Shown piece by piece: positions 1-57,205 of a DNA stretch of 64,000 nucleotides; position 1 is the stretch's first letter, and every line of letters starts with the position of its first letter. The stretch lies in sequence record MK799832.1; one strand, written 5' to 3'. The position numbers and the translations under genes are program-made. The notes below the pieces were generated by a model. The model made no database searches and was not told where the DNA came from. It saw only the letters and a program-made list of their open reading frames with translations.

Positions 1-269
1 GACAGTGCAACAGAAGCACCAACCTTACCAGAGAACTCAGTCTCGGCTTCTTCACCGTCAAGGGAAACGATGGAAGGACCGCCTTGGACATACCAAGCAG
101 CATCTTCGCCCAGAGCACCTTCGTAGCCGACGTGCAGATCAGTTACTGCACCAGTGTAGTCATCACCGACCCAACCAGCGTTGGTCTCGACATTAACATA
201 AGGACCTGCAACAGCAGCGCCAGCGGACATAGACAGAGCAGCAGCAGCTGCGAATACAGATTTGAACAT
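1..269 (-). CDS. Cyanophage/cyanobacterial outer-membrane (porin-like beta-barrel) protein, 5' part; runs off the window
   Basis: Missing from the ORF track (no stop in window). Reverse strand from CAT at 267-269 reads MFKSVFAAAAALSMSAGAAVAGPYVNVETNAGWVGDDYTGAVTDLHVGYEG..., a signal peptide followed by alternating beta-strand pattern. Confidence 0.7.
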   Translation of the reverse strand, partial: MFKSVFAAAAALSMSAGAAVAGPYVNVETNAGWVGDDYTGAVTDLHVGYEGALGEDAAWYVQGGPSIVSLDGEEAETEFSGKVGASVAL

Positions 270-412
270 TAGTTTTACCTCGTTTTTACTTGTGGAATGG
301 TTACCCACAGATGGAAAGGGAATCGACACTCCCTGTTTTATTACCAATTGTAACTTTAATTACTGAAAGACAAAAGGTGAAGTATTTATAGTAACAGACA
401 ACTGTAACTTTG

Positions 413-1228
413 TCAACCCTCTTGTGGGGGTTGTACGTTAGATGGATCGGATACCCGACCCAGATATGGATTGAAGTCCATTAACTCAGAGATTTCCATC
501 TGAGCTCCAGTCTGTGACCAGAAGTTAAATTGAGCTTGATAGTTGCTCTTGTGGAATACCTCCACATGGTCCTGGTGAATACTGGAACCTAGATCGGTCT
601 TGTATAACAAAAGGGGAATGGCGTAAGTGTTACCAGAATTGTAGATGAGATCATCTGCAACAGGTCTTGGTCTTACGTCATTGTCAAGTTTGTACTTGTC
701 ACCACGACAGTGAAGACGAATCAGTTTCTCTGCGTGATGACGAGTGATGATATAACAAGCTGTAGAGAATTCATTCACGAAACGTTTATGAATCTTGATG
801 TTGATATCACCAGTACAGATGATTGAGATCTGAGTTACATCCCAATCATATGGAATCTTACTAAAGAAATCCCTCCATGTAAAGTTCCAGAACCTGACCA
901 GATCAAGTTCACAATCATCTTCCATCATGATTGCGTATGGTTCACCACTATCATAGAACTCTTTGATAGCCTTGAGGTGAGAGGTCACACAACCGATCTC
1001 ACCAGGTGAACACATGTCAGGGTACCTACCCTTCAGAATGTGTCCCAGATCGTCTTCTCGACCGTCGTAAGCGGACACGCGGGTATAGTTAGTGATCTCC
1101 CAGTACTTGAACTGGTCCTCCATGTACTTCCATCTCTCGGGTTGTCCATCGAGATTGATACAATAGATCTTTGGAAGACCTTGAAGTTTGAATACGGCTT
1201 TGTTTCTATCCATTACAGTATTTCCCAA
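413..1228 (-). CDS. Glycosyltransferase family 25 (LPS biosynthesis type)
   Basis: IYCINLD...ERW, SAYDG, GEIGCVTSH, MEDD motifs. Confidence 0.85.
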   Translation of the reverse strand: MGNTVMDRNKAVFKLQGLPKIYCINLDGQPERWKYMEDQFKYWEITNYTRVSAYDGREDDLGHILKGRYPDMCSPGEIGCVTSHLKAIKEFYDSGEPYAIMMEDDCELDLVRFWNFTWRDFFSKIPYDWDVTQISIICTGDINIKIHKRFVNEFSTACYIITRHHAEKLIRLHCRGDKYKLDNDVRPRPVADDLIYNSGNTYAIPLLLYKTDLGSSIHQDHVEVFHKSNYQAQFNFWSQTGAQMEISELMDFNPYLGRVSDPSNVQPPQEG

Positions 1229-2007
1229 TGGTCAGGGTACAAATCTTTAGTGTCTAAGTGAGCATTGTTTGGTCCAAACCATTTGGAAGGAGCAATGACT
1301 CTACCACAGTTTGCCAACCATGCACCCCACCATGAGAATGTAGAGTTGGCAATGATAAAGTCACTACACTGTGTCATCAGGTACAGATCATGATAGGAAC
1401 TGTTACCCTCAGACAGAAGGAATCTATCTGGTTTGAATAGTTCTTGAGAAGCAGCCCAGAATGGATCGTCAGTGAATAGAATTACTTCCCTGTCTGGGTC
1501 AAACTTACTCAAGGCTTTCTCGTACCATTCAAGAGAAAGGTTGTGGTGATTACCACTGTTGATCAGAAAGTCTCCCCTACGAATATGTAAAGCAATGGGA
1601 CTTTGATCGAACACCTCATCAACGATAGGTTCAGACTCTCCTTGAATCGTAGAGTTGAACTTAAAATCCTGACGGATAGTATCTTCAATATGTTTGAAGT
1701 ATTTCTCCGTCTGAAAGAAACCGAACAGACTTACATTGTCTGGACATGTTTCAAATAGATCCTCGTTGAAATGGAACCCGTTCTCCTGAACGACCGACCC
1801 ACCTATCATACCACGTTGACAGTGGATCGTAAAGGGGTCGTCCAGTTCGATCTTGAGGTAGTTACCAATTCCATCATGAAAGACTTCATCATGGTCGGGG
1901 ATACACATATCGTATCCACGATTTGCGGCGATACCTTTTGTCGCAGCATACTGGAACATCTGGTTTCCTAGTTGTCCAGCCTTACCAAGATAATCAAATC
2001 CAATCAT
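1213..2007 (-). CDS. Glycosyltransferase family 11 (alpha-1,2-fucosyltransferase-like)
   Basis: GQLGNQMFQYA, GFFQTEKYF, LHIRRGDF, FTDD, IIANSTFSWWGAWL. Confidence 0.9.
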   Translation of the reverse strand: MIGFDYLGKAGQLGNQMFQYAATKGIAANRGYDMCIPDHDEVFHDGIGNYLKIELDDPFTIHCQRGMIGGSVVQENGFHFNEDLFETCPDNVSLFGFFQTEKYFKHIEDTIRQDFKFNSTIQGESEPIVDEVFDQSPIALHIRRGDFLINSGNHHNLSLEWYEKALSKFDPDREVILFTDDPFWAASQELFKPDRFLLSEGNSSYHDLYLMTQCSDFIIANSTFSWWGAWLANCGRVIAPSKWFGPNNAHLDTKDLYPDHWEIL

Positions 2008-22503: not shown

Positions 22504-22505
22504 CC

Positions 22506-25254: not shown

Positions 25255-25255
25255 A

Positions 25256-25624: not shown

Positions 25625-25643
25625 ATAACTAAAAAGTCTTCAG

Positions 25644-26770: not shown

Positions 26771-27130
26771 TTGTCTATCAAGGATTGTCACATGCATTCT
26801 ATTGAAGTTGTCCCGTCATTTACACCTGTACCGTCTTGTAAACCCCTTCTAGAGTGGTTCATGACAGAATATCTGTCTGACCATAGTGTAGACCTTACAG
26901 TGGTCTATATGCCCCTATCTGATGAGGGTGTGACTGGATGGTGTATGAGGGAGAGTGACTATGAGTTTGTCATTCAAATAGATGAAAATCTAAGGGGTGA
27001 TGAACATGATAAAACTCTCTTACATGAGATGTATCATTGCATGCAACATCTGATGGGTATTCCACGATGTGAGATGTGTGCTAATCTATCAGAAAACTTG
27101 TTACTTGACAAGTACAACAATCAGGACTAG
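26771..27130 (+). CDS. Small HExxH putative zinc metalloprotein; exact start uncertain
   Basis: TLLHEMYHCMQH. Confidence 0.55.
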   Translation: MSIKDCHMHSIEVVPSFTPVPSCKPLLEWFMTEYLSDHSVDLTVVYMPLSDEGVTGWCMRESDYEFVIQIDENLRGDEHDKTLLHEMYHCMQHLMGIPRCEMCANLSENLLLDKYNNQD

Positions 27131-27159
27131 AATAGGCTTGTCCTGGAAGATGAGGATCC
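27105..27159 (+). promoter_or_regulatory. Sigma70-type promoter with conserved downstream box, copy 1
   Basis: TTGACA-N17-TAGAAT followed by AGGCTTGTCCTGGAAGATGAGGAT. Confidence 0.7.
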
Positions 27160-27176
27160 TTTAAGTTATTAAGACC

Positions 27177-29817: not shown

Positions 29818-30251
29818 TTCCAATTTATATTCAAGAACCAATTACTTGGAGAGAGATTGAAGTTCCACAAGAAATTATTCAACATTGTAGTGAATTTACT
29901 CAGTTAAATCCATACGATATTGATAATCCCACAGATAAACTTCGTCTTTTAGATTGTTATTGGTACAATATGAATTACTATAAAGATATTGTCGTCGTTC
30001 CTCCTGGTTGGTAATGTGGAGAATATGGTCACTTGCATTAGGTAGAAAAGATGGACGAACGGATCGGGAAGCTGATTATATCGCTGTCATTAGGACTGTG
30101 GTTTTTGTTACTTATTTCATCACAAACTGTTTTATTGTCGCTGGTGTCGCGCGTCACTGGAACTCAGTAGACAGTTGTAATTCTGGCACAATTCTCTTGA
30201 CACCTGCTCCTAAATAGACTATAGTCTTAAGGTAGTCAATCAGGAGTTCTC

Positions 30252-30428
30252 ATGTCTGCCACTTATCTTCCTCAAAAGACCAAGTATCGCGTCACGCTCG
30301 AGTTAGATGTAATGGACGATTTCAACCCTCATAATATCGATTGGGAAAAAGTTCTCGATGTTCAAGGTAATGAATCTATCGAGGCTTATGTGGAAGACTT
30401 GTCGGTACCTGACTGTTTCTTCTCCTGA
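30252..30428 (+). CDS. Small acidic hypothetical protein (58 aa, below track cut-off)
   Basis: AGGAG RBS then MSATYLPQKTKYRVTLELDVMDDFNPHNIDWEKVLD... Confidence 0.6.
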   Translation: MSATYLPQKTKYRVTLELDVMDDFNPHNIDWEKVLDVQGNESIEAYVEDLSVPDCFFS

Positions 30429-30471
30429 TAATACCAAGGGTGATAAATAATCATATTATCACCCTCCAATC

Positions 30472-30663
30472 ATGGCCTTTTACGCAACTAAACCATCATT
30501 GATTGATCCAAGTATCACAGTATATTATGCTGGTGGTAATAGATGGTCTGACCAATCATCAGAGAAAGTAACTTATGCAACCCGTGATGGTTTAGATGCG
30601 AAGGTTGCCAACGTTGATGGTAAGACTGGTGGGTTCAAAAATGCTACGGTCGTAGAAGAATGA
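30472..30663 (+). CDS. Small hypothetical protein
   Basis: Follows ATAAATA late promoter; YYAGGNRWSD. Confidence 0.55.
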   Translation: MAFYATKPSLIDPSITVYYAGGNRWSDQSSEKVTYATRDGLDAKVANVDGKTGGFKNATVVEE

Positions 30664-31322
30664 AAACATTAAGAGATTTCCTATCAGAAGCATACGATCC
30701 TGACCTCAAAGGTGCACAGATTCGTAGAACTGGTGAAGGTGGTAGGAAACAACCTAAGAGAGAAACTGAAACAAGAAGAAAGGCTGGTCAATCACCACGA
30801 ATGAAGGCAGTTGGTGGTGGTAAGATGGCACCTGTTGGTGAATATAAGACTCGTAAAGACGTAGGTACAACTAAAGCACGTTCTGAAAGAGAACAACAAC
30901 CTGAAAAGGAACGTGGTTCTGCAGAAGTCAAACAAACTTATGCGGATAAGGCAAAGGCAGAAAGAAAGGCAGCAGCAAGAGCACGTATTGCTGCAAGAAA
31001 GGCAGGTACTGAAGTTAAGAAAGACACAACATCATCGAAAGATGTTGAAAAGAAAGCAACACAGATGTTGAAGACTAAGAAGGCAGAACCTAAGAAGACT
31101 GAACCAGCAAAAGAACGTCGTAGTTGGAAGACTACAGACGGTGGTGGTATGACAAGAAAAGAAAGAGATGCTGCTCGTAATAAAGAGACTGGTAAGAGTA
31201 GAAAAGATGTAAAGTCACAACTTCGTGCTGACTTTGAGAAGAAACACGGTAGAAAACCAAACAAGAAAGAGGCAATTCAACTGACTGCAAAGGCACATGC
31301 TGCAGCTAAGGCTCTAAAATGA
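30660..31322 (+). CDS. Highly basic, low-complexity K/E/R/A-rich protein
   Basis: MKTLRDFLSEAY start typical of T4-like virion/internal proteins. Confidence 0.55.
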   Translation: MKTLRDFLSEAYDPDLKGAQIRRTGEGGRKQPKRETETRRKAGQSPRMKAVGGGKMAPVGEYKTRKDVGTTKARSEREQQPEKERGSAEVKQTYADKAKAERKAAARARIAARKAGTEVKKDTTSSKDVEKKATQMLKTKKAEPKKTEPAKERRSWKTTDGGGMTRKERDAARNKETGKSRKDVKSQLRADFEKKHGRKPNKKEAIQLTAKAHAAAKALK

Positions 31323-31560
31323 CACAGAAGATGATGCGACTGTTTAATACAGTCACAGAAGCAAGATCTTATCTGAGAACTAACCATGGTATGACAATTG
31401 CGAGAGCAAAACAATATGTTGATAACCATACTACAATGAAAAATGGTAACAAAGTCTGGGTAGTTCTCCCCTGATATTGGGCGGTCAACATGGCAGGGGT
31501 GTTAGGTTGACGTAAGACCCTTTTTATGGTATAAATATAATTACCCCTGTCAATAGAAGA

Positions 31561-32052
31561 ATGGACCCGTTTGAAAGTCTAAAGAACTTTGTCTGTGAAG
31601 ATGACACAGACCACACACCATATGCAACTCCTGAAGGTATCGGACCAAGACGTGGTATTCCATGGTCTGATGAAGAACGTGAGTTGCAAATAACCACTAA
31701 TCCTTACTTTGACCGTGACAATCAGGTTGAAGCAGGAAAGAAAGGTGGTAAAATTACAAGAGAAAATAACTTAGGTATCTTCAATCCTGAGTATGATAGA
31801 ACTCCTGCGGCAAAACTTGGTGGGAGTAAGGGTTCTCGTGCCCAGATAGACAATAATATTGGTATCTGGGGGATGACACCTGAACAACAATCAGAGAGGT
31901 CAAAAAGAGGAGCCAAAACAACAACATCTCAACGATGGAAATGTTTAGTCACTGGCCACATATCATCCCCTGGTGGTCTCTCTAACCATCAGAAGGGGTT
32001 AGGTATAGATTACAAGGACAAATCACTTCGCGTCAGAATTACTCACCTCTAA
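31561..32052 (+). CDS. Homing-endonuclease-like DNA-binding protein (NUMOD-like repeats; no nuclease motif seen)
   Basis: AGKKGGK...GIF, GSRAQ...GIWG repeats and QRWKCLVTGHISSPGGL tail. Confidence 0.5.
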   Translation: MDPFESLKNFVCEDDTDHTPYATPEGIGPRRGIPWSDEERELQITTNPYFDRDNQVEAGKKGGKITRENNLGIFNPEYDRTPAAKLGGSKGSRAQIDNNIGIWGMTPEQQSERSKRGAKTTTSQRWKCLVTGHISSPGGLSNHQKGLGIDYKDKSLRVRITHL

Positions 32053-32084
32053 AGGTCACCTATAGTACGATACCACACTAAATT

Positions 32085-32966
32085 ATGACTTCCACACATA
32101 TTGAGCACCCAGAGGATATGATTTTGACTGGCGATTTGTCGGTCTTTGATCTTCTGTATGACCGAGCACATATCAGTATGAAAATGGATGGTATGTCACT
32201 TGTGTGGGGTACTAATCCTGCCAATGGTAAATGGTTCTGTTGCACGAAGTCCGCATTTAATAAGAAAAAGATCCGTCTGTGTTACTCTATTGACGACATC
32301 TTCACTCATTTTGGTCATCAAATCGAAGTTGTAGATATTCTGTCTCATTGTTTCAAGTATCTTCCTCGTACCGAGAAGATTTACTGGGGTGATTGGCTTG
32401 GTTTCGGTCGTACTGATGTGTTTACTCAGAACACTCTGACGTATGTCTTTGACGAAGCAATTGACCAGAAACTTGTCATCGCTCCTCACACAGTTGTTGA
32501 CGTTCACGAGGAAATGTGGAAGAATGTGTGTTCACCTTTGATGGAAACATTTGAAGACACCACTATGGTCAAGTGGGTGCAACCTTCTGTTGATCGTATT
32601 CCTCCCCAAGGATCTGTCCCTAAGATTAACCCTAAGGGTATCAAGTTTCTGACTGATAAGGAAGCTGCTAAGGCTAAGACTGCTATCAACGCACTCATCA
32701 AATCTGGTCAGTATATTGATGACGCAACCCTGACTGACATTCTTGGTTGTCAACATCTCGCTAATCTGTATCAGTTTGTGATGGAAATCAAACTGGATAT
32801 TATGGACAGTCTGATTGTCACCGACGCACCACAATCTTATCTTCCTAATGGTAAGAAATGTAGTGGTGAAGGATATGTTTTCCACTCTAACACCTATGGA
32901 TGTGTTAAACTGGTAGATCGTACCGAGTTTGCATATGCTAACTTCCATAATGGATACGGTTCATAA
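32085..32966 (+). CDS. Ligase/nucleotidyltransferase-fold protein (KxDG motif)
   Basis: THIEHPED, KMDG, EGYV, VKLVDR.EF motifs resembling ATP-dependent ligase motifs I, IV and V. Confidence 0.5.
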   Translation: MTSTHIEHPEDMILTGDLSVFDLLYDRAHISMKMDGMSLVWGTNPANGKWFCCTKSAFNKKKIRLCYSIDDIFTHFGHQIEVVDILSHCFKYLPRTEKIYWGDWLGFGRTDVFTQNTLTYVFDEAIDQKLVIAPHTVVDVHEEMWKNVCSPLMETFEDTTMVKWVQPSVDRIPPQGSVPKINPKGIKFLTDKEAAKAKTAINALIKSGQYIDDATLTDILGCQHLANLYQFVMEIKLDIMDSLIVTDAPQSYLPNGKKCSGEGYVFHSNTYGCVKLVDRTEFAYANFHNGYGS

Positions 32967-33009
32967 TTACTCACCTCCAAACGTCCACACTATTACATAC
33001 ACCACATAA

Positions 33010-34188
33010 ATGATCAAACTCCGCCCTCATCAACAGGACGCTGTTTACGCTCTTCGTAATAACTCTATCGGTCAAATCATTGTTCCTACTGGTGGCGGCA
33101 AGACTCTTATCGCTATCATGGACGCAGTGAGACGATTTGAGATAAAAGTTCCTCGCACTATTGTTGTTGTCGCTCCTCGTATTCTGTTGGCAGAACAACT
33201 GTCATCAGAGTATCTGGAACATATCACCAATGCAAATGTTCTCCATGTTCATAGTGGAGAGACAAAACATTTCAGTACCACGAAGTCTGACCGTATCAAA
33301 TTATTTGTTGATATGTGTCAAACTATGCGTGAACACGTTATTATCTTCACCACATATCATTCTCTTCATCGTGTACAAGAGTCTGGTATTGCTGTAGATA
33401 CGATTTACTTTGACGAGGCACATAACTCTGTTCAACGTAACTTCTACGGTCCCACTGAGTATTTCAGTAAGCATGCAGATCGTTGTTACTACTTCACTGC
33501 AACTCGTAAAACCAGTGTGACTGTGAAGAAACCAGGCATGAACTGGACTGAGACTTATGGTCAAGTGATTGCACGTGTGTCTGCACCTGATCTGGTTCAG
33601 AATGGTTACATTCTTCCACCTAAGGTCAAGGTGATTGAGATGGATAAGATTGACAAAAAGTCTCTCACTCCTCATCTTGAGGGTAACAATGTCCTCGCAT
33701 CTATTGACCAGATTGACATCAAGAAGATTCTGGTTTGTGTTAAGACCACACGACAGTTACAGAACCTGTTCATGACTGATTTCGCTGATCAGTTGACAGA
33801 ACGTGGTTACTCTTATCTGTATATCACCGCCAAGACTGGTGCTGTTATCGATGGTCAGAAAGTATCTCGTGAAGAGTTTTTCAATACTCTGAATGCATGG
33901 GGTCGTGACAAGTCAAAGAAATTTGTTGTCCTTCACCGTTCTATTCTGTCTGAAGGCATCAACGTGTCTGAACTTGAGGCGGTTATCTTCCTTCGTAACA
34001 TGGACAGTATTGAGCTTCTTCAAACTGTCGGACGTGTCATTAGGGTTGGTTCTTCTACTAAAACCTACGGTATGCTCTGCGTCCCTGTCTACAATCAGGT
34101 AGGACTTTCCACTCAAAAGTCTCTCCAGCGTTGTGTTGATATTGTGTTTGAGAAGGGAGAAATGCTTGACAGTGTAACTCGTAAATAA
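33010..34188 (+). CDS. Superfamily 2 helicase (type III restriction Res-subunit-like)
   Basis: PTGGGKT, FDEAHN, FTAT, SEGINV, QTVGRVIR. Confidence 0.9.
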   Translation: MIKLRPHQQDAVYALRNNSIGQIIVPTGGGKTLIAIMDAVRRFEIKVPRTIVVVAPRILLAEQLSSEYLEHITNANVLHVHSGETKHFSTTKSDRIKLFVDMCQTMREHVIIFTTYHSLHRVQESGIAVDTIYFDEAHNSVQRNFYGPTEYFSKHADRCYYFTATRKTSVTVKKPGMNWTETYGQVIARVSAPDLVQNGYILPPKVKVIEMDKIDKKSLTPHLEGNNVLASIDQIDIKKILVCVKTTRQLQNLFMTDFADQLTERGYSYLYITAKTGAVIDGQKVSREEFFNTLNAWGRDKSKKFVVLHRSILSEGINVSELEAVIFLRNMDSIELLQTVGRVIRVGSSTKTYGMLCVPVYNQVGLSTQKSLQRCVDIVFEKGEMLDSVTRK

Positions 34189-34282
34189 TAATGTGGGCAG
34201 TCAGTGTGTCTTGGCGGGTAAATTGACGTAAGTCCCACATTATGATAAAATTCTAAATAGTAATGTCATCGCCAAGACACAC

Positions 34283-34765
34283 ATGAGAAATTATCAACTC
34301 CCTTCACAGGGTAGGTTACAGGAACTTTTCGCCTACCAAGATGGTGAACTTATCTACAAAAAATGTAGGGGAAGACAACCTGCAGGTTCTATTGCAGGGA
34401 CTAAACATCACACTGGATATTATCAAATATCTGTGGATAAGAAGATATATTTAAAGCACAGATTGGTGTATCAGTATCATTATGGTGACTTAGAGCAGGA
34501 ACAACAAATAGACCATATTGATAGAAACAAAAGTAATAACAGAATAGAAAACTTACGAGCAGTTGACCAAACACAGAATAATTACAATACTAAAGTAAGA
34601 AACAATAATGAATTAGGTGTCAGAGGTGTATCGACCGCACATAGTGGTAGATATTACTCTCGTATTGCACATGAAGGTAAAACTGAATATTTGGGGATAT
34701 ATGATACTATTGAAGAAGCCCACCAAGTATATCTAAATGCATTACACAAACTCACACATCCTTGA
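34283..34765 (+). CDS. HNH homing endonuclease with C-terminal AP2-like domain
   Basis: HRLVY...IDHIDRNKSNNRIENLR; RGVS...YLGIYDTIEEA. Confidence 0.88.
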   Translation: MRNYQLPSQGRLQELFAYQDGELIYKKCRGRQPAGSIAGTKHHTGYYQISVDKKIYLKHRLVYQYHYGDLEQEQQIDHIDRNKSNNRIENLRAVDQTQNNYNTKVRNNNELGVRGVSTAHSGRYYSRIAHEGKTEYLGIYDTIEEAHQVYLNALHKLTHP

Positions 34766-34920
34766 TTGTAAACCAGGAACATTACCTATCATTGTGGGTG
34801 ATGGTTATCTGGCTGCAATTCCACTGGTTGGTTCAACAACTAAACTTGTGGTTGTTCACAATGGTGTGGTGGTTAAAGTATGTCGTAACAGACAATCTGC
34901 GATGACATTGATTAGAAAAT
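34737..34920 (+). pseudogene. Small conserved phage ORF whose 3' end is fused to nrdB sequence
   Basis: ...KVCRNRQSAMTLIRK then an out-of-frame tail read from nrdB DNA. Confidence 0.5.
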
Positions 34921-35334
34921 CAACACCTTGCCATCACTCAGAACATCCTGAACAAGTGGAGATCAGGTGATGATCCTGAGATGCAACAGATCATGAAGGA
35001 AGAAGAAGAGTGGTTGTATGCCATGTTTGACAAGGCTGTCAACGAAGAGAAGAGATGGGCTGACTATCTCTTCAGAGATGGAAGTATGATTGGTTTGAAT
35101 GACACACTTCTGAAGAAGTATGTTGAGTGGGTTGCCAATCGCAGAATGAAAGCAATTGGTCTTAAGCCCGTGTACGATGTCGCTGCAAAGAACAATCCTC
35201 TCCCTTGGACACAACATTGGATCTCTTCTAAGGGTCTTCAAGTCGCACCGCAGGAGACGGAGGTAGAGAGCTACGTGGTTGGTGGTATCAAACAAGATGT
35301 CAAGAAAGACACATTCTCAGGATTCAAGCTTTGA
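34915..35334 (+). pseudogene. nrdB: 3' fragment of class Ia ribonucleotide reductase beta subunit
   Basis: ENQHLAITQNILNKW...EEKRWADYLF...QVAPQETEVESY; in-frame TGA at 34909-34911 and no N-terminal part upstream. Confidence 0.88.
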
Positions 35335-35437
35335 TGATTGGAATGATTACGCAATAGGACTTTACATCCAATATTGTAGAGAAATCAAAGCCAAAAAAAT
35401 TGATGACTACATATTTCAGGACTATGAAGAAGACTGA

Positions 35438-35860
35438 GTGTGTGACTACGAGAACCCCTGGTACTTTGAAGGTAAACCCTTTACCTCTGATTCTATTGGG
35501 GACAACTTTGGCTTTGTTTATCTCATTACCAATAACGTCAACGAGCGGTGTTACATTGGTAGAAAGTATTTTTGGTCGTTTAGAAAACCAAAAGGTAAGA
35601 GTAGAAAAGTAAAGTCAGAATCTGACTGGAAAAAATATTATGGATCTTGTCCAGAACTAAAGGAGGATGTTACTCTTCTGGGCAAGGATAAATTTTCTCG
35701 TAAGATTTTGTCCCTACATAGTACGAAGGGAAAGGTTAATTTTGAGGAGACCAGACAATTGTTCCTCAATGAAGTCCTGTCTCAAAGGTTGACAGATGAG
35801 ACACCCTTGTACTACAATTCCAACATCCTTGGTCGATATTACCGCAAGGATTATTTTTGA
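35438..35860 (+). CDS. GIY-YIG family nuclease (position equivalent to T4 endonuclease II after nrdB)
   Basis: GFVYLITN...YIGRK...E...YYN. Confidence 0.7.
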   Translation: MCDYENPWYFEGKPFTSDSIGDNFGFVYLITNNVNERCYIGRKYFWSFRKPKGKSRKVKSESDWKKYYGSCPELKEDVTLLGKDKFSRKILSLHSTKGKVNFEETRQLFLNEVLSQRLTDETPLYYNSNILGRYYRKDYF

Positions 35861-35909
35861 GTCACCCAAATCTTTGATGGGAGGTGAATGTCGAATTCTA
35901 TTTAATTTA

Positions 35910-36515
35910 ATGTTTAAAAAACTTCTTCCATTTGCATTGGCAACTATTATTCCTTCGGCTTGTGCATATGCCACAACTGATGAGATTAAAAATCCACCAT
36001 CTGTGGATGTGACTGTGAATGAAGAGAAGGCTGTTCCCATCGAAGTTGTAAGGAAGACATGGGATTGTCCTGATTGCAGTCCTAATGAGAGATATGTTCT
36101 CGCACAACTTCAAGAACAGACTCGTATCACTGATCGTAATGCACTTGCAACGATCATGGGTAACATCAGGTCAGAAAGTAACTTTCATCCTAACATCTGT
36201 GAAGGTGGTGCAAGAGTAAATTATAACCAGTGTCATGCTGGTGGTTATGGTCTGATTCAATGGACTTCTATTGGTCGTTATCGTGGTCTCGGAAACTTTG
36301 CCGCTAAATATAAATGTAACCCGAGTGCACTAGACTGTCAGGTTCGTTACATGGTGAACGAGAGCCAGTTCCAAAAGGTGCTACCTGAGTTCGAAGGTGG
36401 TGGTCTAACTGTGAGACAATACATGGTACCCTCCTACTACTGGTTGGGTTGGGGTATCAAGGGATACCGTGAACACTATGCATATGACTACACTAAACGA
36501 ATGATTTTGGTATGA
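35910..36515 (+). CDS. Phage tail-lysozyme-like peptidoglycan hydrolase with signal peptide
   Basis: MFKKLLPFALA leader; GNIRSES, GYGLIQWT. Confidence 0.75.
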   Translation: MFKKLLPFALATIIPSACAYATTDEIKNPPSVDVTVNEEKAVPIEVVRKTWDCPDCSPNERYVLAQLQEQTRITDRNALATIMGNIRSESNFHPNICEGGARVNYNQCHAGGYGLIQWTSIGRYRGLGNFAAKYKCNPSALDCQVRYMVNESQFQKVLPEFEGGGLTVRQYMVPSYYWLGWGIKGYREHYAYDYTKRMILV

Positions 36516-36904
36516 TTAAGAAGATTAAGACTAAACTCAAATCAATCTATAATATCTTTATTCCTAAAAGTGAAGGTATTATTAAAAAGGTTGTCAGTAA
36601 GGTAAAGAAACCTATTGCAACCTTCAGGTCTGTTCCTGCACCTGTCATTCTTCCTGAGGATCCGTGGTTTGGAAAACCAGTCCTCACCAAAAAGGCCCTT
36701 GACAAACAGAAGGAGATCGACCATAATAAGAAGGTCGAGAGGGAGACCACCCACCAGGTCGAGTCACCAAACATTCATCAAGAGATGTATGAATTGGCGA
36801 CTAAGAACTGGAACACTGTCAAAGAGACACAAGGAGGTTCTGAGAACTTCCATGAAGGTCCAGGTGGTTGGAACTCTGGAACAGGTAATAACCAGTTCCG
36901 TTGA
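36512..36904 (+). CDS. Hypothetical protein
   Basis: ORF track; basic N-terminus, ends GPGGWNSG. Confidence 0.5.
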   Translation: MIKKIKTKLKSIYNIFIPKSEGIIKKVVSKVKKPIATFRSVPAPVILPEDPWFGKPVLTKKALDKQKEIDHNKKVERETTHQVESPNIHQEMYELATKNWNTVKETQGGSENFHEGPGGWNSGTGNNQFR

Positions 36905-47506: not shown

Positions 47507-47965
47507 ATGGGAGCAATGACACCACCAAGTCGTAAGAGTTGTTACAATTTCAGAGTCATCTCTATAGATAGAGTGTTGGATGGGGACACAATCGATGTCA
47601 CAATCGATCTCGGTTTTGACCTTTATAAAAAAGAAAGAGTTAGAGTTGCTGGTGTGGACACGCCAGAGAAAAGAACCAAAGACCTTGAAGAAAAGGAGCT
47701 AGGTATTCATGCGACTAACTGGCTTAAAGATAAACTGGAAGGTGCTATCAGTGGAGATGATGATCTCGTTATTCGCACTGAGCTTGTTGGTGGGGTCGGT
47801 AAGTACGGTCGCCTTCTTGGCTGGCTTTATGTCGGGGACGGCGAGTTGTCCCTTAACGAACAAATGATTACTGAAGGTTACGCGTGGCCCTACGCAGGCG
47901 GAACAAAGAAAAAAGATTTTGAGGAATTGCGTGAGATACGCAAGGCACACGGAACTCTTGTCTGA
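47507..47965 (+). CDS. Staphylococcal-nuclease-like endonuclease
   Basis: RVLDGDTIDV, RVRVAGVDTPE, GKYGRLLG, LNEQMITEGYA. Confidence 0.88.
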   Translation: MGAMTPPSRKSCYNFRVISIDRVLDGDTIDVTIDLGFDLYKKERVRVAGVDTPEKRTKDLEEKELGIHATNWLKDKLEGAISGDDDLVIRTELVGGVGKYGRLLGWLYVGDGELSLNEQMITEGYAWPYAGGTKKKDFEELREIRKAHGTLV

Positions 47966-48011
47966 CCTTATGGTGGTTGATTTATAAATACTATTGTGTT
48001 ATAATAATAGT

Positions 48012-48437
48012 ATGAAACATAAACACCATATTATACCCCGACACTTGGGCGGCACTGATGACCCTGATAACATTGTAGAGTTGTCAGTAGAGGAACATGC
48101 TGCAGCCCATTGGAAATTATATGAAGAGCATGGGCATGAGTATGATAGAATTGCCGCCTCTGGTTTAGATAAACTTATAGGTAAAGAAGAGATTAGAAGA
48201 CAAGTTATTAGTGCCGCAAATAAAGGTAAGATACCCTGGAACAAAGGAAAGAAGACTGGACCTAACCCCGCCATTGTAGCATCAAATAAGAGGAGAGTTT
48301 TTACAGAAGAACAATTAGAAAAGATGCGTGCCGCGGGTAAAAAGAACAAGGGGAGAAAACGCCCAGACTTGGCCGAGAGAAATAGAAATAAAGATATGTC
48401 GAAAGTCAAGAGAGATAGTAATGGTAAGTTTATATGA
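48012..48437 (+). CDS. HNH homing endonuclease with NUMOD3-like tail
   Basis: HKHHIIPRHLGGTDDPDNIVELSVEEHAAAH; PWNKGKK. Confidence 0.85.
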   Translation: MKHKHHIIPRHLGGTDDPDNIVELSVEEHAAAHWKLYEEHGHEYDRIAASGLDKLIGKEEIRRQVISAANKGKIPWNKGKKTGPNPAIVASNKRRVFTEEQLEKMRAAGKKNKGRKRPDLAERNRNKDMSKVKRDSNGKFI

Positions 48438-48510: not shown

Positions 48511-49793
48511 ATGATTGGTTTATATCTTACAGTCACAATTGTTGTTCTCCTGGTAGCATACGCAGGATTTGACAACACAATGAAATTGTTTGCTTACATT
48601 GATTTACAATTAAGATTCATTCCACTTCGTATCAAGATGGAATTAATGAAAAGAAAGTTGGAGAAACAACTTCTTATAGATAGAGAAGAACTTTTTAAAA
48701 AGGTAGAAGAAAATGCAAAAGATCATTAATGGTATTGCATTACTTTCAGGTCTTGTATCACTGGGCGTAGTCGTAGGTGGTACATGGATCTACCTTGAGA
48801 AAGATAACATGATTCATAATGTGAAGACTCAAATGATTAATGGTGTTACTGAGTCAATCACAAATGCATTACCTGGTATGTTGGATGCAGCAATGCCAGA
48901 ACTACCTGATGCAACAGGTGATGTTATCAAATCGTCACCAAATGTAACAGGTGGAGTTGTTCCTTTCTGAAAATTTGATGAGATTTGTTAAATAAAAACT
49001 AATTGAATTAGTTCAATGAAGTTTTTAATCTTGTTTCTCCTGGCATCACCCTCTTATGCTTTGACTGAGGGATCGTTAATGAATCAACCTTGTCCCACAA
49101 CATTAGCTAGTGCTACAGTAGTAGGTGAACTAGATGGAAATTCAACCTATACGGATCGACCCTATAAGGATACAGATCGATCCATTGTCCAATGCACCAC
49201 CTGTAGTATCAGGGATTAATGCACCTGTCACAGTTGACATTGGTCTACCAATAGTAAACTTACCTGGATGTGTAGAAGCTCGTGACTCAACATCAACCAC
49301 ACTCCCCACTGACGACCCGAAAGGTAATTTTACAGTTTGTGACTCTGGCGTTCCTAGTTATAATCCTATTCAGTTTGAACCTGAACAATTAATCTATACA
49401 GAACCAGCAAAGGTACCTAAGGTTCCAAATTCACCAGAACCACCTATACCAGAGACACCAGAGATACCAAAAACTCCTCCACAAACTGCCATTGTAGAGG
49501 AGGAAGAAACTGTAGAAACCAAACCAGAGATACCCTGGACAGAAGAATATCTACCACCACTGGGTACAGTTACAACCACTGCATCGATTGCACTTGTAGC
49601 AACCACATCAGCACTGTTAGCAAAACCAATTGCTGACCTTCTACTCAAGTTAATTAAACCAACCATCAAGAAGGTTGTAAAGAAGGTATCTCAAATGGTA
49701 GGTAAAAAGGTTAAGGTTGATTCGTTAAGGGAGCGCCGAGGTCAGCAGCGTTCGAGGAATAAGGCTGTTCGGATTTTGAAGGGGAGGGAATAG
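48511..49793 (+). CDS. Conserved cyanophage membrane/secreted ORFs (48511-48729, 48713-48970, 49134-49793)
   Basis: ORF track; transmembrane segments and Pro-rich linker. Confidence 0.6.
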
Positions 49794-51478: not shown

Positions 51479-51896
51479 ATGGACGATAAAGAAACTTCTG
51501 ACCTATCTATTGATAGAAAGGAATGTTCTAAGTGTGGAGCAATTTGGTTAAATGGACAACATATATGGTCTGGCACTGGTAAGCTTGGAGATCCTGAAAC
51601 CCTATCTAACCTCGTCTGTGGTTTGGTGGAATCTCCTCAGTGTATAAACCCCTCTCACAAGAAAGGTCATATATATGGAGAGAAGGATACTTGGAAGAAA
51701 AGATCTAGGTTTATTGATTCAAAGATAAAAGGAGAATATGATGCCCCACGGACAACTGACCAGGTATGAGATTTTATCTAAGGTTTATAGATTGAAAAAC
51801 GAACTCAAAGATAGAGAAGGTCTTGCAGAAAACAAATACCTTGCTGACGAGTATCTCAACAAGGTTCTTGATTACATAAACGAATTTACTTATTGA
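51479..51896 (+). CDS. Two small ORFs (Cys-rich 51479-51769; 51738-51896)
   Basis: CSKCGAIWLNGQH...LVC...CIN; MMPHGQLTRYEILSKVY... Confidence 0.55.
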
Positions 51897-51949
51897 ATCC
51901 TTATCATCCTGGACAAGCCTATTCTATTCAAGAATGGACAGTCTGTCAA
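51897..51949 (-). promoter_or_regulatory. Sigma70-type promoter with conserved downstream box, copy 2 (divergent from psbA)
   Basis: Reverse strand TTGACA-N17-TAGAAT-AGGCTTGTCCAGGATGATAAGGAT. Confidence 0.7.
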
Positions 51950-51962
51950 GTGGCTTAAAGAT

Positions 51963-51996
51963 TTGACAGGACCACCAAAGTAGGTTATTATAAATA
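51963..51996 (+). promoter_or_regulatory. psbA promoters: sigma70-type overlapping a T4 late promoter
   Basis: TTGACA-N17-TATTAT; TATAAATA at 51989-51996. Confidence 0.75.
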
Positions 51997-52042
51997 CATG
52001 GACAGGTCAGGGTTTCCTGACTTACCTAAACTCCCCTTAAAC

Positions 52043-52135
52043 CAAGACCTCTAGGGAGTATAAACACGTCTTTCATATCCTCGTTAAGGGTACGAGGAAA
52101 TAGTAACTCCACCATTTCCCTGATGGTCTTACTTT
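52043..52135 (+). ncRNA. PhotoRC-II-like structured psbA 5' leader
   Basis: AAGACC...GGAGT...CCTCGT/ACGAGG hairpin...ACTCC-ACCAT/ATGGT-CTT directly upstream of psbA. Confidence 0.7.
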
Positions 52136-52148
52136 TTTGTTCAAAACA

Positions 52149-53228
52149 ATGTCCGCAACTCTTTCGCGCCAACAAGGCGCCTCTACCTGGGAATCCTTCT
52201 GTTCCTGGGTCACGTCCACAAATAACCGTCTGTATGTCGGTTGGTTCGGTGTGCTGATGATCCCAACTCTGTTGGCAGCAACCGTTTGTTTCATTACTGC
52301 GTTCATCGCTGCTCCCCCAGTGGACATCGATGGCATTCGTGAACCAGTCGCTGGTTCTCTGATGTACGGTAACAACATCATCTCTGGTGCAGTTGTTCCT
52401 TCTTCCAACGCAATTGGTCTTCACTTCTACCCCATTTGGGAAGCCGCATCTCTGGATGAATGGCTCTACAATGGTGGTCCTTATCAACTGGTAGTCTTCC
52501 ACTTCCTCATCGGCGTCTTCTGCTACATGGGTCGTGAGTGGGAACTTTCATACAGACTGGGTATGCGTCCTTGGATCTGTGTTGCTTACTCTGCACCTGT
52601 TGCAGCTGCATCCGCAGTCTTCCTCGTCTATCCTTTCGGTCAAGGTTCTTTCTCTGATGGTATGCCCCTGGGTATCTCTGGTACCTTCAACTACATGCTT
52701 GTCTTCCAGGCAGAACACAACATCCTGATGCACCCCTTCCACATGCTGGGTGTCGCTGGTGTCTTCGGTGGTTCACTGTTCTCCGCAATGCATGGTTCAC
52801 TGGTTACCTCCTCACTGGTTCGTGAAACCACTGAGAACGAGTCACAGAACTACGGTTACAAGTTTGGTCAAGAAGAGGAAACATATAATATCGTGGCTGC
52901 CCACGGTTACTTTGGAAGACTTATCTTTCAGTATGCCTCTTTTAACAACTCACGTTCGCTCCACTTCTTCCTGGCAGCATGGCCTGTCATCGGCATCTGG
53001 TTTACCGCCCTCGGCGTGTCAACTATGGCATTCAACTTGAACGGCTTTAATTTCAATCAGTCAATCCAATCTTCTGAGGGTAAAGTCCTCAACACTTGGG
53101 CTGACGTATTGAACCGCGCTGGTCTGGGGATGGAGGTGATGCACGAAAGGAACGCACACAATTTCCCGCTTGACCTTGCAGCTGCCGAGTCTACTCCTGT
53201 AGCTCTCACTGCTCCTTCAATTGGTTGA
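52149..53228 (+). CDS. psbA: Photosystem II D1 protein, intronless
   Basis: [17 protein letters not shown]...[17 protein letters not shown]; 359 aa, uninterrupted. Confidence 0.99.
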
Positions 53229-53258
53229 AGTTGACAAAAACTGAATAATATGTTAAAT

Positions 53259-53285
53259 AAGAGGAGTTAACACTCCTCTTTTTTT
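53259..53285 (+). terminator. Intrinsic terminator after psbA
   Basis: AAGAGGAG-TTAACA-CTCCTCTT plus T tract. Confidence 0.8.
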
Positions 53286-53729
53286 ATGCGCGTCTGTAAT
53301 AAATGTGGAGAAACAAAAGAGTTCAAGTCATTCTCTCCTAAGGGAAAGAGAGTTGATGGAAGTAGAAAATATTCTTCTCACTGTAAACCCTGTCAGGCTA
53401 AGGTAAAGAAAGAGAGATACTCTCCAGAGAGAAAGAGAGAGAAGGATTTGAAGAGTAAGTATGGTATTACTCTCAATGAATATGATGATATGCTCACAAG
53501 ACAAAATTATAAGTGTGCAATATGTGGAACAGACGACACCACATTTTCAAATGGTAAGAGATTTCATGTTGACCATTGTCACACCACAGGCAAGGTAAGA
53601 GGTCTACTTTGTGGTAAATGTAACGTTGCCCTTGGTCACATTGGTGATAATATAGATACTCTTTCAAGGATGATTAACTATCTCAATGATAACCACACAG
53701 ACCCCCTACAAACTAGCGGAAATTATTAG
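53286..53729 (+). CDS. Endonuclease VII-family free-standing homing endonuclease (F-CphI-like)
   Basis: CNKC...CKPC zinc ribbon; CAIC, VDHCHTTGKVRGLLCGKCNVALG; located directly after psbA. Confidence 0.85.
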   Translation: MRVCNKCGETKEFKSFSPKGKRVDGSRKYSSHCKPCQAKVKKERYSPERKREKDLKSKYGITLNEYDDMLTRQNYKCAICGTDDTTFSNGKRFHVDHCHTTGKVRGLLCGKCNVALGHIGDNIDTLSRMINYLNDNHTDPLQTSGNY

Positions 53730-53778
53730 AGACACCTGGCCTCAGTTGTATCGTCCTCAAAAGAAAAAGAGTAAGTAG
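53686..53778 (+). CDS. 30-aa micro-ORF of a type common in cyanophages
   Basis: MITTQTPYKLAEIIRDTWPQLYRPQKKKSK; recalled motif, not searched. Confidence 0.5.
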   Translation: MITTQTPYKLAEIIRDTWPQLYRPQKKKSK

Positions 53779-53847
53779 TTCTACTCTTGACCCCTTTTGT
53801 AAAGAAGTGTAAACTAAATATGATAAGTATTCTAAGAGGTTAAACTT

Positions 53848-54909
53848 TTGGCTTCATCTACACTTTCTATTCCTAAACAAGGGGGAGGCTGGTTCGATGT
53901 TCTCGATGATTGGCTTAAGCGTGATCGGTTTGTTTTTGTCGGTTGGTCTGGCATTCTCCTTTTCCCTACAGCTTATCTCGCTATTGGCGGTTGGCTTACA
54001 GGAACCACCTTTGCTACCAGTTGGTACACCCATGGCCTGGCGAGTTCATATCTTGAGGGGGCTAACTTTCTCACTGCTGCTGTTTCTACTCCTGCTGATG
54101 CTCTCGGACATAGCCTCTTACTCTTATGGGGTCCTGAAGCTCAGGGAGATTTCGTCCGTTGGGTCCAACTTGGGGGACTCTGGAATTTCGTGGCACTCCA
54201 CGGAGCATTTGCTCTCATAGGTTTCATGCTCCGTCAGTTTGAAATTGCACGTCTCGTCGGTATCCGTCCCTACAATGCGATTGCTTTTTCAGGTCCTATT
54301 GCCGTATTCACTTCTGTATTTCTCATCTATCCACTTGGACAATCCAGTTGGTTCTTTGCGCCGAGCTTTGGTGTCGCGGCAATCTTCCGATTCCTACTTT
54401 TTCTACAAGGATTTCATAACTGGACACTCAACCCCTTCCACATGATGGGAGTCGCAGGTATCCTTGGTGGTGCTTTACTCTCAGCCATTCACGGTGTGAC
54501 TGTCGAAAACACACTCTACGAAGATGGCGAACAGGCAAATACTTTCAAAGCTTTTGATAGTACACAAGAGGAGGAGACTTACTCGATGGTTACTGCGAAC
54601 CGTTTCTGGTCACAGATTTTCGGTATTGCTTTTAGTAACAAGCGTTGGTTGCATTTCTTTATGCTCTTTGTTCCCGTCATGGGTCTCTGGACTGCTTCTA
54701 TCGGTATTATTGGACTCGCTTTTAATCTTCGTGCTTACGACTTTGTATCTCAGGAGATTCGTGCGGCGGAGGATCCAGAGTTTGAGACTTTTTATACTAA
54801 GAACATTCTCTTGAACGAAGGTATTCGTGCATGGATGGCAGGAGTCGATCAGCCACATGAAAACTTTGTTTTTCCTGAGGAAGTACTCCCACGTGGCAAT
54901 GCTCTTTGA
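53848..54909 (+). CDS. psbD: Photosystem II D2 protein (TTG start)
   Basis: [21 protein letters not shown]...[10 protein letters not shown]. Confidence 0.99.
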
Positions 54910-54934
54910 CAAGAACTTGACAACGTGATACTAT

Positions 54935-54958
54935 AGAGGGGTCAACCCCTCTTTTTTT
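54935..54958 (+). terminator. Intrinsic terminator after psbD
   Basis: AGAGGGG-TCAA-CCCCTCT plus T tract. Confidence 0.8.
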
Positions 54959-54972
54959 GTCTAGATATATAC

Positions 54973-55140
54973 ATGGATAATACTTGGCGAGAAGAGTACA
55001 AGAAGATGAAGAAGTTATCTGAACGTCAGATATATCTTCTCGATCATGGTCCAGATTCGTTGTCATCATCATGGCTCGTTATGGCTATGAAGTATGACTA
55101 CGATAAGATCACGGGTAAACGTAAGAAGAGAGATGACTGA
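54973..55140 (+). CDS. Small hypothetical protein (55 aa)
   Basis: MDNTWREEYKKMKKLSERQIYLLDHGPDSLSSSW... Confidence 0.55.
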   Translation: MDNTWREEYKKMKKLSERQIYLLDHGPDSLSSSWLVMAMKYDYDKITGKRKKRDD

Positions 55141-55224
55141 ACACAGTACACGCCCCCTGTTAAATATGGCAGGGGGTTTCCTAATAGCAATTCTAACTAT
55201 CTCAATCCCACTATTAATTTTACT

Positions 55225-55490
55225 ATGAAAGTCTTCACTGTTTACTCAAAGAACGGTTGTCCTTATTGCACCAAGGTAGTTTCTGCATTACAACTTGCTG
55301 AACTTCAGTATGTTGAACTCAAATTGGGTAGAGACTTTGATAAAAATCAATTTTATGCTGACTTTGGACAAGGCAATTTTATGCTGACTTTGGACAAGGT
55401 TCTACCTTCCCTCAGGTATCAGTTGATGGTAAAACTATTGGTGGATGCATGGAAACTGTTAAATATTTGAAGGAGAATAAGTTGGTGTAA
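55225..55490 (+). pseudogene. grx: Glutaredoxin frameshifted by a 26-bp tandem duplication
   Basis: CPYC active site; STFPQV and IGGC lie in another frame after the duplication. Confidence 0.88.
55348..55399 (+). repeat. Perfect 26-bp tandem duplication
   Basis: CAATTTTATGCTGACTTTGGACAAGG x2. Confidence 0.97.
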
Positions 55491-57205
55491 TGGTAGAGGA
55501 ACTATACGAAGTAGTAGAGAAGACAATTGATTACGTCTTCGAAGGTAAATATATGCTTGACATGTATGCATATCTCAAAGACAGTAAGGTCTCTAGAACT
55601 GTCGTAGAGGAGTTCCTGATGAGTTGTACTGCCACTGAGGTAAAGAACCTTGTGTTGGACCTTGAAGGGTATCTGGAGGGTGGTAGTGACGAGGTTCACA
55701 AACAATTACGTGAGGGTTACGGTCACCTAGGTAAACCAGAGGCAAGAAAGATTAAGAATTATCTCGCCAATATTCTTCATGACGCAGAGAGGTATAAAAA
55801 TGATAAACGACCTGGAAGAAAACGAAGAGTCTCTAAATAATGACAACGAGTCTCCTAAGATGAATAGGGGATTTGAATTATTACTCAGAAATAAAAAGAG
55901 GAGGGAACCACCTAAAACTTTTCAAGTAAAGTTTGGAAAGATGGTCTCCTTCCTTCGAAGAGAGTTCCATTTTTTCTTAGACATTCAGTTTGACATAAGA
56001 AAAAAGGAGAGCTAAGATGTTAGCAGTCACACTTACATTGTCCACGGTCATTTCAATCATGTTCCTTTTGGTGGGAGGAGTGATTGGATATCTTTTAAAG
56101 GAATATGTAATCGAAAGGAATTCAACATTTATTCCAACACATCCAGAGATGTTTGACGAAAATGGACAAATTATTCCAGATGATGTTTTAGCTGTTAGGT
56201 TTGAAAATAGCCTAGAGGACTTTGAGTCTGAAGATTGACACCACCAAATAAATATTCTAAACTAAATTGAACATACAATGGCAACTAAATCTTTCACTGT
56301 GAAAACTAAATTACCTCCCAACCCATTTGTTCATGAGATTCTTGAGTTGGTATCTAAACAAAGAACGAAAGCAAAAAAGATTGAAATCCTACAAGAACAT
56401 CGATGTGATGCACTCACATCTATTCTGATTTGGAACTTTGATGACAGTGTTCTGTCAATGCTCCCTGAGGGTGAAGTACCTTTTAATAAGAATGAGGCAC
56501 CTCTTGGCACCGATCACACCTCACTTCGTAAGGAGTGTAGGAATCTGTATCACTTTGTAAAAGGTGGTAATGACGGTCTCTCTAAGACACGTAGAGAGTC
56601 TATGTTTATTCAAATGCTCGAAGGTCTTCATCCTGAGGAAGCATCAATCCTGTGTCTTGTAAAAGACAAACGTCTTGGTGCTCAGTACAAGATCACTGAT
56701 GATGTGGTTCGTAAAGCCTATCCCGATATTGAGTGGGGTGGTCGATCTTGAGTGATAGTATAAGAATTCTCCATCAGGATTGTGATCCATCACTTGCACA
56801 AGATAAGAGTCTCCCATACACAGCTTATCTTGTTGAGTATCTTCAAGATGGTATGACAAAGTTTGATATTGTAACTTCAAAGAAGAAGGTAGATATCTTT
56901 GATCACTATTGGGATAACTACCGTAGTGATTTCAAGAACATGACACAAACTGAAGGTCGAATCAATCCCAAACTCTGGGGTGGTGATAAGAAGTCCGACA
57001 AGAAAAGAAAATGAGTAACGGATTTGACATTAAGTTCGAAGGTTTGGATATGAACCAAGATCAGGTTCAAGCCCTCGTCAAAAAATATAAAAAGATCAAG
57101 AAGTATCAGAAGTCCACGATCTTCGAAGTCAAGACCATGGATGGGACAGAAAACTATGTGTCCCAACTGATCAAAGAGGGCGAAGAGTACGGGCCCCTTG
57201 ACTAA
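55490..57205 (+). CDS. Conserved T4-like cyanophage hypothetical ORFs (55490-55840, ~55860-56015, 56017-56238, 56278-56751, 56733-57014, 57011-57205)
   Basis: Contiguous plus-strand ORFs; 56017 has a transmembrane helix and HPEMFDENG; 56278 has RESMFIQMLEGLHPEEA. Confidence 0.65.

Follow-up and report, generated by a model that had tools for sequence, protein, structure and literature searches.

Directly after its D1 gene psbA, Synechococcus phage S-B05, a 209-kb T4-like cyanomyovirus of the Kyanoviridae, carries a free-standing gene for an endonuclease VII (Endo VII)-type nuclease, and the 3′ third of psbA differs in its synonymous codons from the remainder of the gene. We analysed this locus in a 64,000-nt stretch of sequence record MK799832.1, hereafter the window, in whose numbering all coordinates are given unless stated otherwise. 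Positions 52149-53729, which hold psbA and the nuclease gene, are 100% identical to S-B05 (MK799832.1) and match phages RB11-B and S-H68 at 99.9%. Because the identical cassette occurs in three separate database records (S-B05, RB11-B and S-H68), it is not an assembly artefact. The nuclease gene is optional: it is present in these three phages and absent from RN05-S and S-B43, two sister phages of the same host strain (Synechococcus MW02) that are 97-99% identical around the gene.

The genes and features of this locus lie on the plus strand. The psbA gene (52149-53228; Pfam Photo_RC, E = 3.8 × 10−90) is an uninterrupted open reading frame (ORF) of 359 codons, and Rfam returned no group I intron within 51500-55200, in agreement with the initial annotation, which was made from the letters alone and had described the gene as intronless. 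The psbA 5′ leader contains, outside the cassette, the PhotoRC-II RNA motif that is usual for cyanophage psbA (52018..52111; Rfam RF01717, 75.7 bits, E = 1.6 × 10−12). Between psbA and the nuclease start lie a terminator-like hairpin and T-run (53259..53285); the hairpin proper (53259-53280) has a 9-bp stem, AAGAGGAGT/ACTCCTCTT, and is followed by TTTTT, with the ATG of the nuclease gene at 53286. The nuclease ORF (53286..53729) encodes 147 amino acids, of which residues 53-134 match Pfam Endonuclease_7 (PF02945, E = 2.6 × 10−26), so that the Endo VII-type gene noticed after psbA is borne out, and it belongs to the Endo VII or DHHRN family of homing endonucleases. Its stop codon is overlapped, in another frame, by a conserved small ORF of 30 amino acids, MITTQTPYKLAEIIRDTWPQLYRPQKKKSK (53686..53778), beyond which follows the D2 gene psbD (53848..54909), an ORF annotated as D2 in both MK799832 and PV261924.

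The 3′ third of psbA lies in a replaced segment

The initial annotation had drawn attention to a shift in Phe codons along psbA, and its counts are exact: TTC is used 16 of 16 times before 52860 and TTT 6 of 11 times after it (at 52863, 52911, 52926, 52941, 53001 and 53046), giving a Fisher p-value of 0.0016 for a split that was picked after the data had been seen. The atypical codons that it listed are found at 52914-52919 (GGA AGA) and at 53145-53168 (GAA AGG AAC GCA CAC AAT TTC CCG), and the protein is indeed unchanged, the D1 of S-B05 being 100% identical to that of RN05-S. Taken by itself, the Phe shift of S-B05 (+0.44) stands at the edge of the distribution of 70 nuclease-less psbA genes sampled (maximum +0.38) and not far beyond it, and nuclease carriers as a group showed no significant codon shift (Mann-Whitney p = 0.13). 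The TTT at 52863, moreover, also occurs in the sisters without the nuclease gene, at a position still upstream of the actual breakpoint.

That breakpoint is defined by the comparison with the sister phages. From 51896 to 52876, S-B05 and RN05-S/S-B43 align without gaps and with 7 mismatches in about 980 nt (~99.3% identity); within this stretch, the native 5′ two-thirds of psbA (codons 1-242, 52149..52876) have 5 mismatches to RN05-S in 728 nt and use TTC for 16 of 17 Phe codons. From 52877 to the psbA stop (52877..53228), 75 of 352 nt differ from RN05-S and S-B43 (~79% identity), and the Phe codon TTT accounts for 5 of 10 in S-B05 and 0 of 10 in RN05-S. All 75 differing codons are synonymous, with 72 changes at the third position, seven at the first and one at the second, and they are scattered over the full 352 bp with no focus on one site. 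A recombination test on psbA, which the initial annotation had suggested, placed the maximum chi-square breakpoint after nt 728, corresponding to 52876, with a maximum chi-square of 137 that was reached by 0 of 2000 codon permutations.

The other border is equally sharp. From 53782 onward S-B05 is again ~99% identical to RN05-S (BLAST block 53782-56668, 98.9%), which places the 3′ recombination junction, a feature without strand, at 53779..53782 and psbD in the native downstream flank. Over 37,997 aligned nt of the window the background identity of the two phages is 97.6%, and the psbA patch is among the few strongly divergent patches of this comparison. In total, 905 bp (52877-53781) have been replaced, comprising the psbA 3′ end, the terminator-like hairpin, the nuclease gene and the small ORF, and the two borders at 52877 and ~53781 bracket the nuclease gene.

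Within the replaced segment, DNA that is divergent and still homologous flanks an insertion of ~455 bp on both sides. In RN05-S, the psbA stop adjoins the homologue of the last ~45 nt of the S-B05 nuclease ORF together with the next ~50 nt. This small-ORF flank is ~68% identical at the nucleotide level, as judged by eye, and its peptide is conserved: both phages encode ITTxTPYKxAEIIRDTWPQLYRPxKK in the small-ORF frame, with many synonymous differences. Two flanks that are both divergent yet homologous fit the prediction of co-conversion, in which the DNA beside a mobile gene is copied along with it. The replaced recipient segment (3729-4206 of the RN05-S locus) is roughly centred on the equivalent (4003) of the site of F-CphI, a nuclease of phage S-PM2 that is treated below. 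The small ORF itself is unannotated in MK799832 and has no Pfam match, and in RN05-S it adjoins the psbA stop without an ATG. Because its homologues (MISSETPYKLAEIIRDTWPQLYRP...) adjoin psbA or psbD in ~35 viral contigs, we regard it as a real small gene.

To determine which of the two alleles is the recombinant, we used a sample of 120 psbA loci from IMG/VR, collected with a degenerate pattern that makes no distinction between synonymous codons. One relative of the shared 5′ part (locus L138) has a distance of 0.14 to that part and likewise of 0.14 to the RN05-S 3′ tract, and all such relatives lie 0.20 or more from the S-B05 3′ tract. Because the relatives of the 5′ part are near the tract of RN05-S and far from that of S-B05, RN05-S is unrecombined and S-B05 is the recombinant. 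The S-B05 tract diverges by 20% or more from each cyanophage psbA in the sample and contains zero variants that are rarer than 5% in the sample, and this lack of rare variants argues for imported ancestry and not for recoding. Judged by its distances and variants, the tract is natural cyanophage sequence from an unsampled lineage, and neither a mutated native allele nor a host patch.

The nuclease and a second endonuclease insertion

Among the nearest known systems is F-CphI (ORF177) of phage S-PM2, which acts with a psbA group I intron in what has been termed collaborative homing (Fang et al. 2018, PMC6083498). The S-B05 nuclease aligns with F-CphI over its whole length (residues 2-133) at 46% identity. 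Its residues D96, H97, H99, R105 and N113 align to D101, H102, H104, R110 and N118 of F-CphI, of which D101, H102, R110 and N118 are required according to mutagenesis (PMC6083498); C77 aligns to C84, and the zinc cysteines match. The catalytic motif is thus intact, and the enzyme as a whole looks intact as well. The Endo VII motif is C-terminal (residues 53-134 of 147), as in the 'endonuclease clade' of the same study (PMC6083498). T4 Endo VII aligns to residues 69-120 only, the sequence matches in the PDB being Hpy99I and T4 Endo VII, and the gp13.5 nucleases of T7-like enterobacterial phages are as distant as F-CphI (44-49% identity).

We placed the nuclease in a tree of 99 relatives, whose deep branches are weak. 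In the F-CphI clade (13 rows, support 100), every nuclease stands beside an intron-bearing psbA, and the S-B05 enzyme falls outside this clade; in its sister clade (9 rows, support 98), every neighbouring psbA is intronless. The S-B05 enzyme groups with those of loci L221, L218 and L222, next to which stand the non-psbA nucleases of L044 and L047 (Shimodaira-Hasegawa-like approximate likelihood ratio test (SH-aLRT) 93). Its closest relatives (75, 68 and 59% identity) are all encoded directly after an intronless psbA, and most of the top 30 relatives in IMG/VR sit between psbA and psbD. With 10 of 133 sampled psbA contigs (~8%) combining an intronless psbA with such a nuclease, the arrangement is common in nature.

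The S-B05 nuclease resembles F-CphI in its C-terminal Endo VII motif, its DHHRN residues and its N-terminal CxxC...CxxC region, as well as in being encoded by a free-standing gene directly after psbA and before psbD. It differs in belonging to a separate lineage of the tree, and by this position and its identity it is a member of the family and not the F-CphI orthologue. Collaborative homing of F-CphI with the psbA intron was reportedly described by Zeng, Bonocora and Shub in 2009. No group I intron interrupts the psbA of S-B05 in this manner, and because the gene is intronless, the self-protection of S-PM2, in which the intron splits the site, cannot apply.

About 5 kb upstream of psbA, S-B05 has a second insertion relative to RN05-S, 467 bp in length (47966-48432), with an endonuclease ORF (47994-48437) that matches the Pfam domains HNH and NUMOD3. 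The insertion directly follows an SNase-like gene (47507-47965), whose final 88 bp (47878-47965) are divergent: there are 23 mismatches in 47800-47965, the first of them at 47878, and the codon differences are synonymous in 15 cases and nonsynonymous in 4. For more than 400 bp on either side of this tract and insertion there are zero mismatches. By its layout, 47878..48437 is a second putative homing-type scar with the same architecture as the psbA cassette.

The two phages differ at further places. A patch of ~300 bp (48900-49200) has 74-76% identity to RN05-S, with 66 mismatches in near-perfect surroundings; it overlaps the start of an ORF without Pfam match (49134-49793), and there is no indel or nuclease gene directly there. 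A glycosyltransferase-rich block of 17 kb (1-17269) is inverted or relocated relative to psbA in RN05-S (locus L307), and the region from ~17270 to 36800 has no counterpart within the 49 kb of RN05-S that were fetched. RN05-S and S-B43 carry, between the small upstream ORFs and the psbA leader, an extra ORF of 1.6-1.9 kb that is absent in S-B05 (51892-51896 in the window versus 1147-2748 of locus L001) and has no Pfam match.

Explanations for the replaced segment

We consider it probable, at roughly 70%, that S-B05, RB11-B and S-H68 gained the homing-endonuclease gene between psbA and the small ORF by double-strand-break repair. A nuclease encoded by a co-infecting donor genome would have cleaved an RN05-S-type psbA-psbD region lacking the nuclease gene, at a point within or close to the 3′ end of psbA, and resection of the break would have followed. 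Repair would have copied the donor over the gap, bringing in the nuclease gene together with 352 bp of psbA and ~95 bp with the small ORF. The donor would have been a cyanophage encoding the same D1 residues, and the codon shift would be the donor's synonymous make-up. That the nuclease made the break, where it cut and how the psbA of S-B05 itself escapes are points that we infer. The initial annotation had drawn two inferences, that the shifted tract is the footprint of co-conversion in intronless homing and that silent recoding of the target protects the phage. The first of these is supported, since the borders bracket the nuclease gene and the sisters without it have a uniform allele, and the second is not, as set out below.

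Comparable systems exist in phage T4, where the free-standing SegF and SegG show intronless homing with co-conversion of flanking markers (Belle 2002 and Liu 2003, as cited in PMC3037559 and PMC10055350), and where MobE is another free-standing homing endonuclease (PMC2790892). S-B05 shares with SegF, SegG and MobE an optional nuclease gene between conserved genes and a bounded flanking tract that is replaced along with it. The T4 enzymes belong to the different GIY-YIG and HNH families, and the evidence for S-B05 is comparative. Protection of an intronless carrier, in the T4 systems as in S-B05, must come from sequence differences or from the insertion itself. Nuclease genes have also been found at the boundaries of phage genetic exchange (PMC10448857 / PMC10055350), a pattern that S-B05 and RN05-S display twice in one 64-kb window (psbA/Endo VII and SNase/HNH-NUMOD3). 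In the psbA case the gene concerned is an auxiliary photosynthesis gene, and its tract is purely synonymous because of extreme protein constraint. Taken together, the event is best explained as a new, very clean case of an already known process, intronless homing with co-conversion.

The same 905 bp could have been exchanged through general homologous recombination by the phage machinery, with the nuclease as a passenger and not as the maker of the break, which we regard as unlikely. Mosaic psbA genes in cyanophages were reportedly described by Zeidner in 2005 and Sullivan in 2006, and the S-B05 gene resembles them in its intragenic recombination and in the shift of composition and codons along the gene; mosaicism is a general property of cyanophage psbA. 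Nuclease-less pairs, too, have more divergence in the 3′ than in the 5′ part (+0.04), and other divergent patches have no nuclease tied to them, for example 48900-49200 and 14100-14400. Unlike the mosaic cases, however, the S-B05 patch is phage-derived, is joined to a mobile nuclease gene and has both borders defined to within a few bases. Against a passenger role, the segment wraps the nuclease gene tightly, the same pair of genomes contains a second endonuclease insertion with the same layout, psbA genes that carry a nuclease have a larger 3′ excess of divergence, and the enzyme retains all catalytic residues. In the only two other sampled pairs of a carrier and a non-carrier with near-identical 5′ psbA (L141/L161 and L009/L085), mismatches likewise rise towards the 3′ end.

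Several observations count against homing by double-strand-break repair. Plain homologous recombination with a nuclease-carrying donor would leave the same pattern, and the excess 3′ divergence of carrier pairs (0.10, versus 0.04 in pairs of two non-carriers) comes from non-independent pairs. The identity of 46% and the separate lineage mean that the same target as that of F-CphI cannot be assumed. The donor was not found: megablast and blastn searches of the tract against 50,697 phage records returned S-B05, RB11-B and S-H68 at 99% or more and then a match of 81.5%. Searches by way of the nuclease gave relatives of at most 50% identity in IMG/VR and, among 5.8 billion proteins, relatives of 75, 68 and 59% on short ENA contigs, the best of them on a contig of 594 bp; the psbA ends beside these three are 76-81% identical to the S-B05 tract. 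Finally, with 0 amino-acid changes over 117 codons, the pair of S-B05 and RN05-S marks the limit of what was sampled. This protein identity looks exceptional, but pairs with identical proteins and 35-48 nucleotide differences are common, which makes the value a range extreme and not an outlier.

The part of the initial annotation that did not hold assigned the specificity of F-CphI to the S-B05 nuclease and explained the codon shift as protection of its own psbA by silently recoded MHERNAHN codons, combined with a co-conversion tract. The background on which it drew is accurate: the 60-bp F-CphI substrate, taken from S-BM4, covers the MHERNAHN codons (PMC6083498 Table S3), and the intron of S-PM2 separates R334 from N335, which are the Arg and Asn codons of MHER|NAHN. 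In S-B05, the equivalent of the substrate is 53120..53179, and the equivalent of the intron-insertion site, as given by the S-PM2 exon ends, lies between 53150 and 53151. In the central 29 nt of the site, S-B05 has 5 differences from the cleavable S-BM4 substrate and RN05-S has 2, and the base before the insertion point is G (AGG) and not T; in the clade sister to F-CphI, moreover, TTT at codon 339 and AAT at codon 338 suggest that immunity by synonymous variation may exist there.

Over the whole 60-mer, by contrast, S-B05 is no further from the substrate than RN05-S (9/60 versus 10/60 differences). At the site, 14 otherwise divergent viral contigs contain the exact S-B05 26-mer, and none of them has an Endo VII gene in the fetched locus, psbD following psbA directly in at least 7 of them; the initial annotation had named the same codons in phages lacking the endonuclease as evidence against its proposal, and for the MHERNAHN site itself they are found there. 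The site is highly polymorphic, with ~70 synonymous versions among 120 psbA genes and AGG in ~7%. Relatives of the nuclease occur beside other versions, including the near-canonical GAGCGT|AACGCT beside that of L222, and the sites of the closest relatives vary. With the spread of the differences over the tract, its lack of rare variants and the distance of the nuclease from F-CphI, these observations make protection by silent recoding improbable, and the insertion itself could equally disrupt the target. A spreading resistant haplotype forming a 'conserved island' at the site was also considered and dropped as evidence: an unbiased sample of 120 sites held ~70 haplotypes, with that of S-B05 at about 1 in 120, and a demonstration of enrichment would take the total number of psbA contigs. 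A new protection mechanism is not established by the S-B05 case. S-B05 may owe its protection to part of the synonymous differences, or else to the insertion, which would split a target at the junction of psbA stop and small ORF.

We consider it very unlikely that an RN05-S-type tract underwent accelerated synonymous change in place, through mutagenic repair or through selection for nucleotide divergence. All 75 differences are synonymous, as such a process would have it, a tree of the 3′ part pairs S-B05 with RN05-S (SH-aLRT 95) with a branch of 0.30 on S-B05 only, and 62 of 97 synonymous codons differ between the two (64%, versus a median of 55% for all pairs). The pairing in the tree, however, arises because the two D1 proteins are identical, and at synonymous sites 64 of 85 unrelated sequences lie nearer to S-B05 than RN05-S does. 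No S-B05 variant is rare in the population, the small-ORF flank outside psbA is equally divergent, and the tract of the second cassette has 4 amino-acid changes. Among pairs with identical proteins, 35-48 differences in 292 nt recur, and the 59 of S-B05 and RN05-S are the maximum seen; 0 amino-acid changes with 59 nucleotide differences would indicate that the donor had the same D1 protein type. Least credible of all is derivation of the 3′ third from a Synechococcus psbA gene. Zeidner reportedly proposed in 2005 that hosts and phages exchange psbA segments, but we rejected a host origin because the tract reaches no more than 78% identity to the Synechococcus and Cyanobium psbA genes fetched from among the genomes listed, which is below the 81% of the RN05-S tract, and uses TTT, AGA, AGG and GGA, unlike the hosts.

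Possible self-protection among psbA-associated nucleases

If recoding does not account for S-B05, synonymous variation may still matter in a related lineage. Within the sister clade of F-CphI, every intronless carrier uses TTT at codon 339, mostly together with AAT at codon 338. Across the sample, TTT at codon 339 was present in 11 of 17 nuclease carriers versus 8 of 76 (p = 9 × 10−6), and S-B05 is without TTT there. When each site was compared for association between the nuclease and synonymous variants, codon 339 came out on top and the other matches were scattered along the tract, which is consistent with shared ancestry. The TTT at codon 339 may be a candidate self-immunity signature for this sister clade. 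Its loci (L005/6, L008-L011, L016, L024 and L026) combine TTT at 339 with mostly CAT at 332 and AAT at 338, and synonymous sites near codons 332/338/339 vary within it. Intron-carrying psbA alleles keep canonical exon flanks.

Interruptions of psbA were seen in many viral contigs, among them also L013, L026, L098 and L306. Eight loci (L012-L015, L021, L022, L027 and L034) have an insert of 207-212 nt in psbA at MHER|NAHN, as in S-PM2. Further interruptions in some of these contigs lie after residue 60, near residues 108 and 216-231 and at residue 298, and others near psbA nt 548 and 645. For phage S-SRM01, the annotation splits psbA into pieces, two of which are separated by a homing endonuclease. 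S-B43 has other DNA in place of the last 25 nt of psbA (L002 4055-4057; 53203/53204 in the window): after ...CCTGTTGCA, the frame runs on into DNA that corresponds to window 1662..1 inverted, the annotated product being a 466-aa 'D1'. This replacement by inverted DNA marks a rearrangement breakpoint ~50 nt downstream of the equivalent of the F-CphI site.

More tentatively, and as a possibility that we would not call probable, several lineages of Endo VII-type homing endonucleases may contest cyanophage psbA with different strategies of self-protection. In our sample, the F-CphI clade is marked by an intron with canonical flanks and its sister clade by an intronless psbA with AAT-TTT (and CAT at codon 332). 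The S-B05 lineage shows neither of these marks, which hints at a different target or at protection through the insertion itself. If this view is true, ~8% of psbA-carrying viral contigs (10/133) would host such elements, these would be a major reason why the psbA 3′ end turns over faster, and nuclease pressure would shape the synonymous sites of a core photosynthesis gene.

With both borders fixed to within a few bases, S-B05 provides an unusually clean natural record of probable homing in an environmental phage. Synechococcus MW02 is host to isolates both with and without the nuclease gene, and 5 kb away lies a second event of like kind; isolates from the same host make intronless homing in cyanophages directly testable. 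Because psbA is widely used as a marker of cyanophage diversity, it matters that a shift in codon usage inside the gene can be the scar of a selfish element, and that trees of its 5′ and 3′ parts can disagree for the same reason.

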